From contig NW_003314318.1 in the NCBI RefSeq assembly GCF_000143415.4, positions 806,001-870,000 on the forward strand: a stretch of 64,000 nt of DNA. Reading direction: 5' to 3'. The position numbers were made by a program, and so were the translations under genes. Origin of the DNA: Selaginella moellendorffii. Its lineage: Eukaryota > Plantae > Lycopodiophyta. This document shows positions 22,955-56,350 of the stretch, in pieces. A model generated the notes under the pieces. That model saw only the letters and a list, made by a program, of their open reading frames with translations. It did not search any database and was not told the DNA's origin. Every line of letters starts with the position of its first letter. The first letter of the stretch is position 1.

Positions 22955-24129
22955 ATGCTTAGCGGAACTTTTCTTCTTGCGTCGTGGATCTTTCCAGGCA
23001 TCGCAATGCGGCAAAGTTCGTGCCGTGAGATGAGCAGGCGCGCACTGAAAATCGCAACCAGGAAGGTACCAAAGTAAAAGATTAGTTTTTGGCGAGGAGA
23101 AGAAAAAGCTGGCCTGACCTTTGGTTGTTTTGGTGCAGGCTGCACAGAGCTTGCGGCGGGACAAGATCAACAACAGGATCTCCAAGGAAGTCGCCAAAGC
23201 GTGTAACTTGCCTTCTTCGTGCTCTCGATAGCAGCAGAGATTTCTAGTGTTGTTGCCCACTCTCGTTTTTTTCTTGAGCAGTGTTCGGGAGGGTGGTGCC
23301 AACACAGCGTCAAACTTGCAACTGGCAGCGGTGCTTCAACGGGCGAGAGAGCTGAATGTCTCGAAAGAAATCATCGAGCGAAACATGAAGAAAGCGAAGG
23401 ACACCGAGAACCAATCCTTCAGTGAGATCCTGTACGAGGTAGAAACACACAAAGCGCGTGTTAGCTAAAAAGATAGAACCTTTGCTTTTTTGCTTTCTTA
23501 CGTGAAGCTGTGCTTGCAGGTGTTTGGCTTTGGTGGCGTTGGGATCGTGGTCGAAGTTCTTACGGACAATCCTAATCGCTCGGCGTGTCAGATTCGAGAA
23601 GTGGTGAAGAAGTGTCGAGCCAAGATGGCTGGCTCCGGCTCGGTTCTCTTCGACTTCAAGCGAGCTGGTGTACTTTGCGTTAAAGCTGCCGCAGACGTGA
23701 GTGCCGACGAGCTCTTTGTAGCAGCCACCGACGCTGGTGCCGAGGATGTCATTGAGCCTCCGGAAGACGAGGAAGCCTCCCTGGAAGACAGGTACACCAA
23801 AAGCTTTTTTGCTTTAGTGTCATAAAAGCAAAGCTTCTCTACACTTTTTCCAACAGGGTCTTCAAAGTGATAACAAAGGCGGAAGACTACATACCTGTAA
23901 AATCCAAGCTTGTAGAGGCCGGGTTCCCAATTAGCGTCGACTCGGGTCTAGAGCTCGTGTCAAACGCGCAAGTTGAGGTAACATATCGAAACGCTAGTGC
24001 CTGATTTTGTTCCGACTGGGATGATGCTCCTAGGTTGATGATGAAGCGATGGAGTTGAACAAGGGTCTTATGGAAAAGCTACTGGAGCTGGATGATGTGG
24101 ACGCTGTTTATTCAAGTCAAAAGGCTTGA
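22955..24129 (+). CDS. YebC/PmpR/TACO1 family protein (organelle-targeted), multi-exon
   Basis: MSRRALKIATRK, VREGGANTASNLQLAAVLQRARELNVSKEIIERNMKKA, YEVFGFGGVGIVVEVLTDNPNRS, GSVLFDFKRAG, and terminal KLLELDDVDAVYSS. The start codon is approximate. Confidence 0.88.
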
Positions 24130-24699
24130 AGTATAACCGGTTCAGTGTCTGTAAGTGGACAGAGGAAACAAAGCAGCAAAGGTTCGAAACAAGAATTGAA
24201 AAACATACCTGATGCACAGCCTTAAAAATTATTTTCTTAGAATGAAAACCGTCGCGTAGAATTATGATTTTGTAAGATGCTAAACGACCCCGCAATTTAT
24301 AACTCCACAGTGTCCATTACCGGAGTATTTTTCTTGGAAGCCCTGCATGTGCTTGGCAGCCTGTGACTAGCGTTAATGTATACACTTGCAGTTTTAAAAC
24401 CGGCTACATTCAACCAACCTTTCGGACGGCAAGAATCATCCCTCTTTTGCATTTGCGCAATCAATTTTTTCCGCGTTAGCTCTGATCCAAGCAAAAACTC
24501 GTTTAGTAAAAAGAAACAACACAGAGAAACAGAGAGAGAATCCTACTTCGCTTTTCAGATCTTGAAGCTCTTGGCTTTCTCATTTGTTGTTGGTAAGATT
24601 GTGTAAGATACAGGACTGATTATGCTCAACACGTATCATTTTCGATTTGATCGCCTCTGAGGTGAAAGTTATTATATGAGCAGTTTTATCACGAGCTCG

Positions 24700-26087
24700 A
24701 GCCAACGTCTTTTTTAATTGTTTAGCATGTTTCTCAAAGAGCCTCTATCGATCAGTACAAATCCTGAGGTGCAACGAATATTTACCGATCCACGTAGACT
24801 TTAGAACCGGTCATTAGAAAAAACCAACGTATACCTTCTGAAGGAAACCGAAAGCGTGCTATAGTTCTTGTTGGAACGGCAGCATCGTCCTGAGGCTTCC
24901 AAATAACGAGCTCCAAAGATGACGAGGAGAGCACTAAACCATCATAACTAGCTTAGCCGTACTTGTGAGTGTAACTCACCTTTGATCTCTTTGATATTCT
25001 TAAAATCAAAATCCATCTCTGCAGCGCCTTCAAACTCCTGTAAAGTTTGACGTCAGTAGCAACTTTGATTGTAATTGCACTCTCGTACTTTGCTTGGTGA
25101 GTTTCCACTCCGATATGCACCCATACTTCTTCGTGAGAAGTATGTTCGTTGCCATCGATGAAAACTTGTAAGGCTCGAAAAGAATAAACGCTAAAGCACC
25201 TCTCACCTCTCGATGCTCCCAGGGACTCATTGACCAAGTTAACGAAGTTCCTAGTGCCGGTCTTGACATCTGGCCTTTTCATCTCGTGCATGGATAGCAT
25301 TGCCCTTTTCGCAGCATCGTCATCAACTATGTCCATGAGCCTCTTGTGTGCCCTTGTTAATTGAAAAAGCATCTCCGCAGCACTAGCTTGAAGTTGGAAG
25401 TCTCCACACTTCGGGAGTAAAACCTTGAAAAGCTTGTAGCTGCATGAAAACCTTAGAAACATAAAATGAAATGCATAGCCGAACTCACCATCCAGTCACG
25501 TGAAGTATCAGAAACTTCTGGTTCTCGGCCGATCGAGTAATCAAGACACAGAGAGTCTCCACAGAAGCACGCTTGAGTTTTAAAGACCCCGACTTCAAGC
25601 CAACGTCAGAAGCCTAGTAATGAAGTGCTTCCCACAAAGAACTTTGCCTGTTAAGAACGAAAGAAAAAGGAAAATCACTAAGGCCTCATCTCTACATACG
25701 ACCGCTCACCTTAAGGATGATCGCTTAGATCTTCGATGGCAAACAAAAGCTGCAAATTCAACGACAAGACCTCCCTCCGAATGAAATCCACAGTCACAAG
25801 ATCATCACACACAGCTTCGCCAGCGCTTCCAAAAACTCCTCAGTCACGAGAATTGGAAAAGATTGAAGCTTGCTTCAGCAATTCCTCCACGCGCCCATAT
25901 AGTGCCGCCGCTGGAAGCCATGGATTTGGACCTGAAGAGCTGTGAGAAAGAATCGCTTATACCAAGAAACACTCACATTCTCCAGGACGCCGAGTAGCCG
26001 CGCGAGATCCAGCCCACCGATGAATTCCGATCGAATGCATTGATAATCTAAATCCCCGGCAGCTGGATCCGTCCGCGGCGACTCCAT
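24700..26087 (-). pseudogene. Multi-exon gene or pseudogene resembling the SYCP2 N-terminal ARM-like + PH (Spt16M-like) domain
   Basis: Segments CGDFQLQASAAEMLFQLT, TRNFVNLVNESLGASR..SVYSFRALQVFIDG and EEVWVHIG parallel recalled SYCP2 segments [45 protein letters not shown] and [8 protein letters not shown]. GT-AG introns are evident, but some exons carry apparent stops or frameshifts. Confidence 0.55.
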
Positions 26088-26204
26088 CGCGCTCTCATCC
26101 ACGAAAAACCCTAGCTAGCTCTGCACTGGGCGGGAAAACGATAGCACACGTCAAAGAATCGAGGCCGTCAAAGTGGCGTTTGTCAATTAACGGTGGAGAT
26201 CGTG

Positions 26205-27481
26205 CTACAAGGCAGGATAGAAGTAAGAGCTCGTAGCAAATCCCAGAAACAATAGACCTCCAATGAGCGCCACGGTTCTCTGTGATATTCTCATGGCGAG
26301 AATTCGACCGCCAACGACGGCAATGCTCGTACACACGGTGTGTCCAACGATCGCTCCCAGTGTAACTCCCACAGCGTTTTTGTGAGCAGCAAGCTAGAAA
26401 GACGAAAATTTTGAGCTGGATCAAGGAAAATCAATGCGAACTTAACTGCAATCGTTGCGATTTGGCTTCTATCTCCCCATTCCGCCAAAAACGTGAGGAT
26501 GAACGACTGAAACGACCGGCAAAATGATCAGCCAGAGAATGAAAACTTGGAGTGTATCACCAAAACGTACCTCCAAAAAGATTGGAGTGCAAAACCTCGT
26601 GAAAAATTGTCGGACTCTTGACTTTCCATGCGTGCTGCCTTCCAGTTTCTCTTCCACCTGCGGGAACGAAGTTGGAAATGAGCGAGCAAAGCTTGGGTAC
26701 CTCTCCGAGCTCGTTTTGTTTCTCGGTGACGCCAGACTTCCACGCTATATACAATAGCCGCAATCCAAAGAAAGTATACAACACTGCAACAAGGGAAAAC
26801 TGAGGAAAAGAAAGGATCGAAGAGAAATCCATACCAGTGGCAAAACTATTGACGTGCCTTCGCGAGATAAGATTGGGAACTATTCTTCCAAGAACAGTGG
26901 AGAAAACCTGTTCGCAAAAGAATAAAAGCACCTGAGTAAACAGCAAAGAAAGCTTGAAAGAACTTACAGTCATGAGAGCAAGCGCGGTGAGAGCTCCAGA
27001 AAGAACTATGGCTCGCGGATGCCTCATCGCCATTAGAGCTGCGATGATGAAAGTCTCGTCTCCAATCTACCAGAGGAGCACAAAAGAATTAGGCCTAAAG
27101 CAGCAACCATTAGCAACGGAGAGTTCCGGGACGAGCAAACGTTACCTCGCTGACAATTATCATAGAAAAGCTCGAGAAAACAGCGTCGAGCAAACCATAC
27201 CCGCTGAAAATCCCCGGTGCTTGGATCAAGGCCCCGGTGGAATTCATGGCTTCATCCATAGAAATCTAGAAGAGAACAAAAAATGGCAGCATTTTGGGAG
27301 TGATCAATCGATCTGGAAGGAAAGTATGCTTACCTGTGCTTTTCGCCAGCCTTGCGCCCACTGCGAAGAGCAAACACAAAAGAATGAGAAACACAAGCCG
27401 CCAATGCAGGCCTCGATCGAATCCAATCACCTCAAGCAGCGACGCCATCACGAGCGCGATCAAAATCCACTGCTTCCTCAT
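26205..27481 (-). CDS. GDT1: GDT1/TMEM165 (UPF0016) family Ca2+/Mn2+ transporter, multi-exon
   Basis: Two EXGD(K/R)(T/S)-type motifs (IIVSEIGDETFIIAALMAMRHPR and FLAEWGDRSQIATI), C-terminal GHTVCTSIAVVGGRILA..ISQRTV..YFYPAL*, and a hydrophobic N-terminus. Confidence 0.92.
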
Positions 27482-27616
27482 GGCGCCGGCTCCCAGAGCT
27501 CAGATCCTTAGATCCACTACCAGCATAACCCTAGCACAGATCTGGCCTTGGCGCCCAAAATCGCAGTCACTGACTAGCTACGCAAGAAAAAAAATGCCCT
27601 GTTTCTATTTCTAGGG

Positions 27617-30334
27617 TTAGGGTTCTTGGGCGTCTTCTTCCTCCGCGTCTTGGTCTTGGATCGTTTGGCAAATCTCGGGGATGGATTGGTCCAAATCGTC
27701 GGCCTGGGCGTTGGAGAGCAGCACATACGGCACCGCCGGACACTCGGATTGCTCCTCCATAGCCACGAGCTTCCTGGCGATGCGCTTAGCGCGCTTGACA
27801 TCCTTGTGGTTCTTGCAAGCGCCCAGTAGAGTGGTGAGCACCACCACATTGGGCTGGAATGGCATCGTCTCCATCAATTCCTCGGCCTCGTCTAGCCGCC
27901 CAGTTCGTCCCAGGCAGTCGACCAGGATTACAAAGTGGAACACTCCCGGGGTGAGGTGATAGTCTTGGATCATCGATCCAAAGTGGCGATATCCATCCTC
28001 CTGGAGGCCCGAGTGGCTACAGCAATTCAAGACGTTCACGAACGTCACGGCCTCTGGATTCCTCCCGTCCAGCTGCATCGCCAAGAACAGCTCCAGCGCC
28101 TCGATCCAGTGGCCATTGCTCGCGCAGCTCGCGATCATCGCGTTCCAGCTGATCACGTCCACCACCTCGCGGCCATCGTGCAGCAGCATCGCCTGGAAGA
28201 TCTCGCGAGCTCGACCCACTCGCCCACACCTCCCATACATGTTGATGAGCGCGGTGGCCACGATCACGTCGGTGTCCAATCCAGATTCCACCACCAGCGC
28301 GTGGATGATCCGCGCCTGGGCGATCGCCGCGGCGCTCGCAATCGCCTCCACGACGCTCACGAACGTCGTCACGTCGGGCCTGGCCGATCCATCGAGATCC
28401 ATGAGCCGGAAGAGCTCCAGCCCCAGCTCGCCGCGATCGCTCAGCCCGTACGCGTTGATCATCGTGTTCCAGGAGATCACGTCTCGCTCGGGCGCTCGAT
28501 CGAAGAGCTCCCTGGCCTCCAGAGCTTCGCGCGCGATGCCATGCGCCTGGATCATCGTGTTCCAGCTCATGAGATCGCGCTCGGGGAGCCTGTCAAAGAT
28601 GGATCTCGCGCGGATGGATTGGCCGAGCTGGGCGTAGCCAGCGAGGAGCGCGTTCCAAGTTACTCCATCGCGCGTGGGCATGCTCTCCACGATCTGGCTC
28701 GCGGCGACCACGAACTTGCTCTGGGCCAGCGACGAGACGATCGAGTTGAGCGTGACAAGAGTCCAGTGTGGCATTCGATCAAAGGCGAGCTTTACGAGCT
28801 CGATCTTTCCGCTGCTCGAGTAGCCATTGAGCATCGCGGTCCAGGAGATCACACTCCGGCTGGGCATCTGATCAAAGACCAGCTTCGCCTCCGCCGATCG
28901 AGCGTGAGCTCCATAGACGCAGATCATCGCGGTCCAAGAGACGTGATCCTTCTCGGGCATCGACTGGAAGAGATCGCGAGCTTCTTCCAACCGGCCATTC
29001 TCGCTCAGAGATTGGAGGAGAGTGTTCCAGGTGACAACGCTCCTGGATGGGATCTTGCGGAAGAGGGCGATTGCCGGGGAGAAATCGCTGCTCTGGGCGT
29101 AAGACGCAATCGCGATGTTCCAGGAGACGACGTCGCGGAGTCGCATGAGCGAGTGGAAGATCTCCCGCGCTCGATCGAGCTCGCCGTTCTGGGCGAATGC
29201 TCGAAACATCGCGTTGCAAGACGAGGTTCCTCGCTGCGGCATTCTCTCGAAGATCTGGAGCGCGCTCTTGGCGTCGCAGCAAAGGCCATAGCCGGTGAGC
29301 ATCGCGTTACAAGATAGCACATCGCGGGTGGGCATCTCGCGAAAGAGTTTGCTCGCGTGATCCATATGCCCGGCTTGGGCATAGGCGTGGATCATCGCGT
29401 TCCAAGTCACGACGCTCTTCTCTGCCATGGAATCGAAGAACCAGCGCGCTCGATCGAGCTCGCCACCGTGAAGAAACGCCACCATCATCGAAGTGGACGT
29501 GATCACATTGCGCTGCTCCATGCGATCAAACACCGCGATCGCTCTTCCCAGATGCCCGTGCTGGGCATACGCCCCGATCATTGCGTTTCCAGCCACCACG
29601 TCTTCCTCGGGCATTCGATCGAACAGCGTCTTGGCCTCTTCCAGATGCCCCTTTAGACCATAGCCTTGGATGGCAATGTTCCAGGAGAGAATGCTCAGCT
29701 GTGGCATCCTCTCAAACACAAGCCCCGCCCGATCCTCTCGCCCGCTCTGCGCGAAAGCGTTCATCAAGACGTTCCAGGAGATGTGATCCCTGTGAGGAAT
29801 CCTGTGGAAGAAATCGATGGCGTGGTCGAGATCTTGGAGCACGCTCATCACGGTATTCCAGGAGATTGCGTCGTGCTCCGGCATCCTGTCAAGGAGCCAG
29901 AGGCAGCAATCCATATGCCCGTTTCGCGCATACGCTTGGATCATCGTGTTCCAAGTGACCACAGACCTCTGTGGCGCGATCTCGAAGATCTCTCGCGCCG
30001 ACTCCACCATGCCGGCATGGGTGTAGGCGACGATCATGTTATTCCACGAGAAGACATTGGGGCGATCCAGCCGCTGGAATGCCGATCGCGCCTCCTGGAA
30101 GCTCTCGCATTTGGTGTACATGTGAACGAGGAGATTGCCCTGTAGGGTCTGTGAATCCATGCCATGATCGGCGAGCACGGCATGGATTCGCCGCCCCTCG
30201 AGCAGCGCCTTGGATCCGGCGCACTGCCGCAAGAGAAACGCGCAGAGATTTCCATCCGGATCGCGCCGCTGCTGCTCGATTTGCCGCACGGCCTCGCGCA
30301 AATCAGCTCGTTTCAATGCCTCGCCATGCCTCAT
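27617..30334 (-). CDS. PLS-class PPR protein (905 aa), E-type C-terminus, intronless
   Basis: More than 20 tandem PPR motifs, mostly about 31 aa, ending HFVILVDCLGRTGRLDEAEELMETMPFQPN...LLGACKNH...PYVLLSN. No DYW domain. Confidence 0.93.
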   Translation of the reverse strand: MRHGEALKRADLREAVRQIEQQRRDPDGNLCAFLLRQCAGSKALLEGRRIHAVLADHGMDSQTLQGNLLVHMYTKCESFQEARSAFQRLDRPNVFSWNNMIVAYTHAGMVESAREIFEIAPQRSVVTWNTMIQAYARNGHMDCCLWLLDRMPEHDAISWNTVMSVLQDLDHAIDFFHRIPHRDHISWNVLMNAFAQSGREDRAGLVFERMPQLSILSWNIAIQGYGLKGHLEEAKTLFDRMPEEDVVAGNAMIGAYAQHGHLGRAIAVFDRMEQRNVITSTSMMVAFLHGGELDRARWFFDSMAEKSVVTWNAMIHAYAQAGHMDHASKLFREMPTRDVLSCNAMLTGYGLCCDAKSALQIFERMPQRGTSSCNAMFRAFAQNGELDRAREIFHSLMRLRDVVSWNIAIASYAQSSDFSPAIALFRKIPSRSVVTWNTLLQSLSENGRLEEARDLFQSMPEKDHVSWTAMICVYGAHARSAEAKLVFDQMPSRSVISWTAMLNGYSSSGKIELVKLAFDRMPHWTLVTLNSIVSSLAQSKFVVAASQIVESMPTRDGVTWNALLAGYAQLGQSIRARSIFDRLPERDLMSWNTMIQAHGIAREALEARELFDRAPERDVISWNTMINAYGLSDRGELGLELFRLMDLDGSARPDVTTFVSVVEAIASAAAIAQARIIHALVVESGLDTDVIVATALINMYGRCGRVGRAREIFQAMLLHDGREVVDVISWNAMIASCASNGHWIEALELFLAMQLDGRNPEAVTFVNVLNCCSHSGLQEDGYRHFGSMIQDYHLTPGVFHFVILVDCLGRTGRLDEAEELMETMPFQPNVVVLTTLLGACKNHKDVKRAKRIARKLVAMEEQSECPAVPYVLLSNAQADDLDQSIPEICQTIQDQDAEEEDAQEP

Positions 30335-54769: not shown

Positions 54770-55230
54770 CGCTCGAACTGGAAGCAATCCCCGCACTTCA
54801 AGTGGAGTTGTGGATCCTGCAGTTACACACAAAGGTATGAAAAGACAAAGTTTTCCAGAGGTATTCTCATACTTTACCTCTGATTTGAACAGCTTGCTGA
54901 GCTTCGGCCGTCACCCGTCGCAGCTTCGGGAACCCAGCAGATGACCCCCTGCAACAAAAAAATCGGACAACTTTAGTACCGGGGAGATCAAGCAAAGGTG
55001 ACGAAGACAAACCTGATGGTCCAACACGAACTTTGTTGGTTTTTCTGTTTTCTCCCTAGCAGCTTCTCTCTGATCAGCGCTCAGCACGGCTGCCGTCGTG
55101 GAATCCAATGCCGCTGCAGAAGGGAGATTATTAAAGCGAAAACCTCACCTTTAAAGGCAGCATAGCGAAGCTTTTACTTGTTTCTGTTGATCACAGTATC
55201 AACTGCAGCCTTTACGTCCTCTGGAACATT
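54770..55230 (-). pseudogene. Spliced fragments resembling glutaminyl-tRNA synthetase
   Basis: Exon-like pieces EDVKAAVDTVINRNK, LRYA, GVICWVP, KLFKSE and GDCFQFERKG parallel recalled plant GlnRS segments (KGVLHWVA, KLFNSE, GDRFQFERLG). In-frame stop and frameshift; catalytic core absent. Confidence 0.5.
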
Positions 55231-56049
55231 GTGGATGAGAAGGGAAAAAGATAAACAAACTGCCCTCTCAAACTTCGGGATCGCGGCTTACGGCACTGAT
55301 GTACTGGAAACATGTACCAAACGAACAACCTTTCCAGACGTGATGACAATGGACAGGTGTGTATCTTGCGGCATCCTGGCTAGAGAGAAAAGTCGAAGAT
55401 CTTACCGAGCAAATACCGTACCATATGCAGAAGCTTGCCAAACCGTTCTCCACCCCGGCCTACAAAGAGAGGTTGGAAAACACACAGAGAGCAAGGGGGC
55501 TCACCTCTTGGATGACGGCAACGCGCAAAATCAAATTTTGCGAGTGGAAAGAAATTTCTCTGGGAGAATGATCGTCATTCATTATTCAATGACTTAGATC
55601 CAATTAGAGGCAAGATCCTCCTCTCAACCTGGTCATTCTGGACTCTCTGGCGAGCGAACGCTAAATCATTATCTAGGATAGAGCCTGATTTACCTCGATA
55701 CTCTGGAGGATGCTCCCTGCTACACAAGAGATCCGAATCATCAAATCCACAGCGCCCATAGCTAACCACCTGGAGCAAATAGTGCCAAATACATTTCCAT
55801 GGCTGTACAATTCCCACAGCTCCTTCTTCTTCCTGTCAATCTCTTCCAACTCCTCTTGAGATTTAACCTGTTTAGGCCTACAATCCTTATGTCGACGGTA
55901 ATCCACCTCTATCCAGTCAGGTTTCACGCCTGTCCTTGAGAATTCCATGACTGCTTTAAGCAACTCCACGGCCGCTTCCACCTCCTCCATAGCTTTTCCC
56001 TGCCCTAGAAAACTGCTGTTATATAAATGACAAGTAAAAAGGATATCTC

Positions 56050-56350
56050 GGGAATATCTGATTTCGGGTGTATCGGTGCATACAAAAACCCAGCAACAGT
56101 CGAGGAGATCCACGAGACCAAACACGTATAGTTTGAGCTCGAGCTCAAGTCATCCCTATCTCCAGAAACTTTAGCTTGATCTTGGTAGAGAAATTGGCAT
56201 TGATCTCCATTCCAGCTTCTTTCTCGGCTTGAGTAGCACAGGCCTTGATACCAGCAACAAAACTTCAATCGTCTGGCTTCTATAGCCTTCATCCTGTCAA
56301 AAAGTTCCAGTCCCAGCTCTTCCTCCCGATTCTCCACACAGCCATTTAAG
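56050..56350 (-). pseudogene. Degenerate PPR fragment
   Basis: LLNGCVENREEELGLELFDRMK resembles a P-type motif of PLS PPRs; frameshifted. Confidence 0.4.

Follow-up and report, generated by a model that had tools for sequence, protein, structure and literature searches.

The window analysed here, a 64-kb stretch of Selaginella moellendorffii DNA, holds at 24297-26087 on the minus strand what is very probably a transcribed pseudogene, a segmental duplicate, now decayed, of Selaginella's orthologue of the meiotic axis-core gene ASY3, which belongs to the SYCP2/Red1 family. The relic is a young and ordinary pseudogene (Ks ~0.1) in which a real homology is preserved, and it is unable to encode an axis protein. 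Two intact ASY3 loci were found in S. moellendorffii, one on GL377622.1 (L001) and the other on GL377565.1 (L002), as had been surmised in a sequence-only reading of this DNA, which took the damaged look of the copy as a hint of an intact paralogue or allele elsewhere. The parent gene has 22 exons and codes for 954 aa. Its product would begin with an ARM-like helical repeat and a PH/Spt16M-like domain, together forming a head homologous to the N-terminal domain of SYCP2, continue with a short conserved motif and a long disordered middle, and end in an ASY3-like coiled coil; the window copy retains exons 1-7, which encode the head and are still recognisable, plus scraps of exons 18-22.

The head is represented in the window by an ORF of 169 aa on the minus strand (24953..25462), which contains GDFQLQASAAEMLFQLT, RNFVNLVNESLGASR...VYSFRALQVFID and EEVWVHIG, and by a second minus-strand ORF (25485..25598) with LKLKRASVETLCVLITRSAENQKFL; the motifs quoted in the earlier reading are present where that reading had placed them. 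When all PDB sequences were searched with the 169-aa ORF (phmmer), the sole match was the N-terminal domain of mouse SYCP2 (5IWZ, E=0.011), and the alignment passes through the SYCP2 motifs given in the earlier reading, which proved to be near the true mouse ones (including EEFWIDFN). The resemblance is beyond chance. Against 1.84 billion protein representatives, phmmer with the same ORF found 13 relatives (best 1.2e-54), from S. moellendorffii itself (86% identity), Diphasiastrum, Adiantum, Calypogeia, Riccia, Marchantia and the zygnematophyte Spirogloea. Moreover, a profile (A1), made from an alignment of eight seed-free streptophyte N-termini, matched 5IWZ with E=1.3e-12 over chain residues 74-331. 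The window ORF and the profile thus both show what Tromer et al. (2021; PMC8131943) asked of a family member, significant similarity to SYCP2 in the last ARM repeats and the PH domain. Searches were run with pieces of the window or with intact database proteins, the latter representing the complete gene product. The fold was assessed on residues 1-380 of the intact paralogue P0014 and not on the broken window copy. In the AlphaFold2 model (pLDDT 77, pTM 0.78), residues 10-241 are helical and are followed by seven strands and a last helix, an arrangement in which a helical repeat packs on a PH-like beta sandwich that has a helix at its C-terminal end. Foldseek placed 5IWZ first in the PDB (E 2.5e-10, TM 0.57/0.58 over 392 columns), and the next matches were generic helical-plus-PH proteins (E ~1e-4, TM ~0.2), leaving 5IWZ as the isolated best match in the structural comparison that the sequence-only reading had proposed. 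Profile and predicted fold together identify the domain as a true SYCP2/Red1-type ARM-PH head, as had been claimed at the outset.

A direct match to the Pfam models SYCP2_ARLD and SYCP2_SLD, proposed as a check in that reading, did not appear: hmmscan of the window pieces, P0014 and P0019 gave none at E<=10, these models being metazoan-built and their presence in the scanned Pfam copy unconfirmed. A Pfam scan of four window ORF pieces (E<=10) returned no match at all. A word-index protein search with the 169-aa ORF was empty as well, which is expected because the lengths of the relatives (950-1270 aa) lie outside the length window of that search. Chance was taken to explain the matches to 4L8I (E 0.61) and to a Carica papaya protein (P0012; 11 short stretches), and both were discarded. 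In the precomputed Pfam record, PF26290 (DUF8079) lies on the intact Selaginella proteins of L001 and L002, the local Pfam scan being without it; PF26290 may be Pfam's own unnamed model of the plant head domain. The SYCP2 N-terminal domain in 5IWZ was reportedly described by Feng et al. in 2017 as an ARM-like domain combined with a Spt16M/PH-like domain. Like mammalian SYCP2, the plant head has a helical repeat followed by a PH-like sandwich, and the junction motifs GDF/YxLQ, LNLVNxxLG, SVY/RVYTF, EExWIxF and LSFY are common to both; the differences are that identity amounts to only 17%, that the plant proteins are ~950-1270 aa long, compared with ~1500 aa for SYCP2, and that the plant head has no match to the metazoan-built models. 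In Spirogloea muscicola, three short models of the head domain (P0010, P0020 and P0013; 322-397 aa), one of them fused to a cyclophilin domain, are probably fragmented gene models. With these, the head domain is older than land plants.

The identity of the parent gene is given by its C-terminus. PF20435 (ASY3-like) matched there in P0001, P0002, P0003, P0005, P0009, P0011, P0014 and P0019, which come from Selaginella, Diphasiastrum, Adiantum, Calypogeia, Riccia and Marchantia, with E values of 9e-9 to 1.5e-16; P0014 scored 45.9 bits (gathering cut-off 25.7), and seven other seed-free proteins 34-60 bits. The match, at model positions ~619-786, corresponds to the coiled coil, is homologous to the C-terminal coiled coil of angiosperm ASY3/rice PAIR3, and is present in all full-length relatives (954-1266 aa). 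Head and C-terminal coiled coil are thus joined in one protein in every full-length relative, and in the window as decayed remnants only. Hence, the head is the N-terminus of the ASY3 orthologue and not a stand-alone module, and the SYCP2/Red1 axis-core family is represented in plants by this gene. The sequence-only reading had suggested a stand-alone gene, since it saw neither closure motif nor coiled coil, and in this it was mistaken; none is visible in the window because 1.8 kb is deleted and the last exons are decayed.

In five of seven seed-free proteins, the head is directly followed by the conserved motif [RK]xS[IM]G (residues 372-383 of P0014), which, by a position matching that in Red1 and SYCP2, is a candidate closure motif for the HORMA domain of ASY1; in Red1 and SYCP2 a HORMAD closure motif directly follows the head (West et al., 2019; PMC6349405). 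In the disordered middle, LRSKLKAML (residues 451-459 of P0014) has the hydrophobic spacing of LRSKLWEIL, the REC8-binding CIM of Arabidopsis ASY3 (preprint 10.64898/2026.01.19.700424), and this short similarity suggests a putative CIM-like REC8-binding motif in the Selaginella protein. The exons for both candidate motifs are deleted from the window copy. The coiled coil would be the part that, as in Arabidopsis, pairs with ASY4 in axis filaments; Arabidopsis ASY3 forms a heterotetramer with ASY4, assembles into filaments and localises to the meiotic axis (West et al., 2019; PMC6349405). The Selaginella parent resembles the ASY3-type protein of Marchantia polymorpha (PTQ44307/Mp2g06990, 1129 aa) in having head, [RK]xS[IM]G motif, disordered middle and coiled coil. 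The Marchantia protein is ~34% identical to the Selaginella head, and its gene is intact, unlike the window copy.

The Selaginella gene differs from seed-plant ASY3, which is without the ARM-PH head altogether (PMC6349405, PMC8131943). West et al. (2019; PMC6349405) stated that plant ASY3 'appears to entirely lack a Red1/SYCP2-like N-terminal domain' and termed the absence of the head from flowering-plant ASY3 a 'mystery', and a 2026 preprint (10.64898/2026.01.19.700424) repeats that the ARM-PH head is 'missing in plant ASY3'. According to Tromer et al. (2021; PMC8131943), both the ARM and the PH domain were lost from ASY3 in spermatophytes, and Marchantia polymorpha serves as the plant step in their homology path to SYCP2. 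The earlier reading, according to which angiosperm ASY3 has no such head and seed-free plants keep it, is thus in line with this literature on the first point and with the relatives in lycophytes, a fern and liverworts on the second. Retention of ARM-PH outside seed plants was already published by Tromer et al. (2021); the claim is correct, not new. The intact Selaginella gene is also already annotated as ASY3-like, the UniProt name of the Selaginella proteins being 'Meiosis-specific protein ASY3-like coiled-coil domain-containing protein', and the present locus adds only a decayed duplicate. The ARM-PH head is an ancient part of axis-core proteins, and seed-free plants bearing it are the natural place to ask which partners the head has and why it is dispensable in seed plants, as Tromer et al. 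(2021) already pointed out.

S. moellendorffii ASY3 also has the accessions EFJ15601/EFJ38834 and UniProt D8SJ34/D8QNY5; its RefSeq proteins (XP_024544183.1/XP_024532214.1, 954 aa) map exactly onto L001 and L002 as 22 exons, and the lesions of the window copy were called from an exon-by-exon three-way alignment with these two intact loci. The window copy shares their exon layout and their PPR and GDT1 neighbours, with 92-94% nucleotide identity in aligned columns. The exon 1 remnant (25977..26087, minus strand, as are all the following features of the relic) was placed by alignment to L001/L002 and by tblastn of P0014; it begins with the ATG at 26087, and deletions of 5 nt and 1 nt garble ~17 residues before the frame is restored. 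Intron 1 (25932..25976) has GT..AG ends and 45 nt, 12 fewer than the 57 nt of the intact loci, and its spliced joint is seen in the RNA-derived contigs X6 and X10. The exon 2 remnant (25710..25931) carries indels of +2, +1, -9 and +2, with three frame switches in comparison with P0014, as well as a CAA>TAA change at 25711-25713 (Q114*); the indels are confirmed by RNA contigs X6, X8 and X10, with 0 differences over 25751-25930. Intron 2 (25648..25709, 62 nt; joint 25646>25709 in X8 and X10) is followed by exon 3 (25489..25647), which encodes ARM-like helices including LKLKRASVETLCVLITRSAENQKFL and has lost 4 nt between 25596 and 25595. The RNA contigs show two forms of exon 3, one with AGCG inserted behind 25595 and one identical to the window. 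After intron 3 (25440..25488, 49 nt; joint in X6, X8 and X10), exon 4 (25207..25439), encoding the last ARM-like helices (GDFQLQASAAEMLFQLT; RNFVNLVNESLGASR), has a 1-nt deletion at ~25209.

Intron 4 (GTGAGAGGTGCTTTAG, 25191..25206) has collapsed to 16 nt of the original 55 through a 39-nt deletion, and its remnant is read through as five extra residues; the 169-aa ORF is open because the 1-nt deletion in exon 4 and the 16-nt intron remnant sum to 15 nt. At this site the RNA of the intact copy omits 15 nt and the DNA contig X2 has 49 extra letters. Exon 5 (25089..25190) opens the PH-like domain (VYSFRALQVFID, EEVWVHIG), and a 19-nt deletion after 25105 shifts its frame; the exon 6 remnant (24980..25037; EFEGAAEMDFDFKNIKEIK, in another window frame) has a 3-nt deletion. 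It is separated by intron 6 (24934-24979; joint 24933>24980) from exon 7 (24835..24933), which encodes PH-like strands (VLSSSSLELVIWKPQDDAAVPTRTIARFRFPSE) and was located by tblastn and by alignment to the intact loci. Introns are ~45-65 nt long, and the S. moellendorffii genome is of a compact land-plant type. Beyond exon 7, blastn revealed the breakpoint of a ~1.8-kb deletion at 24795..24796 (L001 12425|14226 against window 24796|24795). The deletion takes exons 8-16 and most of exon 17 (~residues 345-790 of P0014), and with them the conserved post-PH motif, the disordered middle and the CIM-like motif, so that, unlike the intact gene, the window copy is without exons 8-17. Decayed exons 18-22 of the ASY3-like C-terminal coiled coil follow at 24297..24746, with at least eight deletions of 4 to 101 nt. 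They were found by tblastn of P0014 residues 791-830 and 856-954 (E 1.7e-8), and no Pfam match is left in these coiled-coil remnants; the original stop codon of the gene remains at 24297-24299.

Altogether, the damage to the window copy comprises 10 or more frame-breaking indels, a nonsense codon, a collapsed intron and the 1.8-kb deletion. Translation from the ATG at 26087, with intron 1 spliced out as in the RNA contigs, would run into the stop at 25875-25877 after 55 codons; given this, together with the indels, Q114* and the large deletion, no open reading frame extends across the spliced exons. Three of the lesions had been noticed in the sequence-only reading, and alignment to the intact loci bears them out: the apparent frameshift near 25600 is the 4-nt deletion of exon 3, the stop suspected in 25710-25730 is Q114*, and the 16-nt intron remnant lies at exactly 25191-25206. 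The further indels in exons 1, 2, 5 and 6, the deletion at 24795/24796 and the coiled-coil exon remnants down to 24297 had been overlooked.

Public runs were compared with window positions 24000-26600, the RNA label of these runs being our guess, backed by spliced joints. Three RNA-type runs from different studies yielded contigs with 0 differences to the window over 25751-25930 and 25516-25646. The same three runs also contain the intact form, with AGCG after 25595, with 15 nt absent at 25193, and with HISYYTNSPSK-coding letters at 25038-25103, and the full intron 4 of the intact copy is visible in a DNA run. GT..AG joints were seen at 24934-24979, 25440-25488, 25648-25709 and 25932-25976. 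Thus, the exact RNA-type matches and the two distinct forms in the runs argue that the lesions are not assembly errors and that the relic is transcribed and spliced. The 1.8-kb breakpoint is spanned by none of the listed contigs, and the evidence for that lesion is the assembly.

Identity between the window copy and the intact loci is 92.6% in exons and 92.0% in introns, and Ks is 0.09-0.12, ten times that between the two intact haplotype loci (0.011). Ka/Ks of the window copy is 0.44-0.53, which does not by itself show relaxed constraint, since a value of 0.58, based on few changes, is obtained between the two intact haplotypes. Upstream of the relic, on the same strand, lie a GDT1-family gene (~26100-27300, minus) and an intronless PPR gene of 905 aa (27617-30334, minus), both with 91-94% substitution identity to their counterparts, as for ASY3. 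Since the three genes are equally diverged, the whole PPR-GDT1-ASY3 block is a segmental duplicate of the two intact loci, at a Ks of ~0.1. No second ASY3-like copy was found within the 64-kb window. The relic's tail-to-tail neighbour is a TACO1/YebC-family gene (23247-24004, plus), for which the RNA-type runs give good coverage. A further stretch at 55058-56343 is 87-91% identical (97%, substitutions only) to DNA upstream of a 14-3-3 gene at L001/L002; hence, the duplicated block is not limited to the three genes, and in the window ~25 kb of other DNA lies in between.

The state of the neighbours varies between the copies. In the window block (26100-30334) the 905-aa PPR ORF is intact and GDT1 is strongly represented and spliced. 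In the comparison with L001 8826-10893 and L002 9302-11364, where ASY3 is intact, the PPR match ends at window position 29025, which leaves ~1.7 kb without a counterpart; the GDT1 part of the old model P0001 seems disrupted (AEWEIEAGSQ vs AEWGDRSQ in the window). Reciprocal decay after segmental duplication of PPR-GDT1-ASY3 is possible. A clean reciprocal gene loss, with ASY3 kept in one block and PPR and GDT1 in the other, is a stronger proposition that we consider unlikely; if it were true, the two blocks would not be independently losable. We regard as equally unlikely the separate idea of a regulatory role, which is conceivable because the relic is still transcribed and correctly spliced: its transcript could act on intact ASY3, for instance as an antisense RNA, as a decoy for NMD or by giving rise to siRNA.

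The public S. moellendorffii assembly contains two haplotypes. This, along with the same PPR-GDT1-ASY3 order at L001 and L002, would fit a window copy that is a null allele, on a divergent haplotype, of a single ASY3 locus and not a separate paralogous locus. However, two intact haplotype loci already exist, Ks 0.011 apart, and the window copy is ~0.1 from both; moreover, its downstream neighbour is the TACO1/YebC gene, where L001 has a 456-aa gene without a Pfam match on record. We therefore hold allelism to be very unlikely and treat the relic as a duplicate at its own locus.

It could also be argued that the locus is a working gene for the ARM-PH head by itself, which would serve the axis or the centromere and need neither closure motif nor coiled coil, since exons 1-7 span just the head, the locus is transcribed and spliced, and the 169-aa ORF is open through the intron remnant. 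The frame from the ATG is, however, exhausted after 55 codons, at least six frame-breaking indels and a stop fall inside the head exons, and the 19-nt deletion throws the PH strands out of frame; the coiled-coil exon remnants downstream mark the locus as a formerly full-length ASY3 gene, and the full-length relatives are all fusions with the ASY3 coiled coil. We give this proposal next to no credence. We give equally little credence to assembly or sequencing errors that would disguise a truly intact ASY3 gene. In favour of errors, a good part of the indels is short, simple runs (tttt, gtgtgtg) contain some of them, and the highest share of the window's sampled words in any sequencing run is 0.54, but this reading is already largely refuted by the error-free RNA-type matches across the 4-nt deletion (25516-25646) and four indels (25751-25930), by the occurrence of the intact form as a distinct sequence in the same runs, and by the 6-8% substitution divergence from the intact loci.

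As a decayed duplicate of ASY3, the relic is a small example of decay after duplication, and genome annotation should label the locus a pseudogene and keep it apart from GDT1, with which old models merge it. The 2011 gene models P0001 and P0016 (EFJ15601 and EFJ38834; 1069 and 1125 aa; L001 10001-15010 and L002 10001-15484) join ASY3 to pieces of PPR and/or GDT1. In RefSeq, the 954-aa models begin at the methionine of MESPRMDP.
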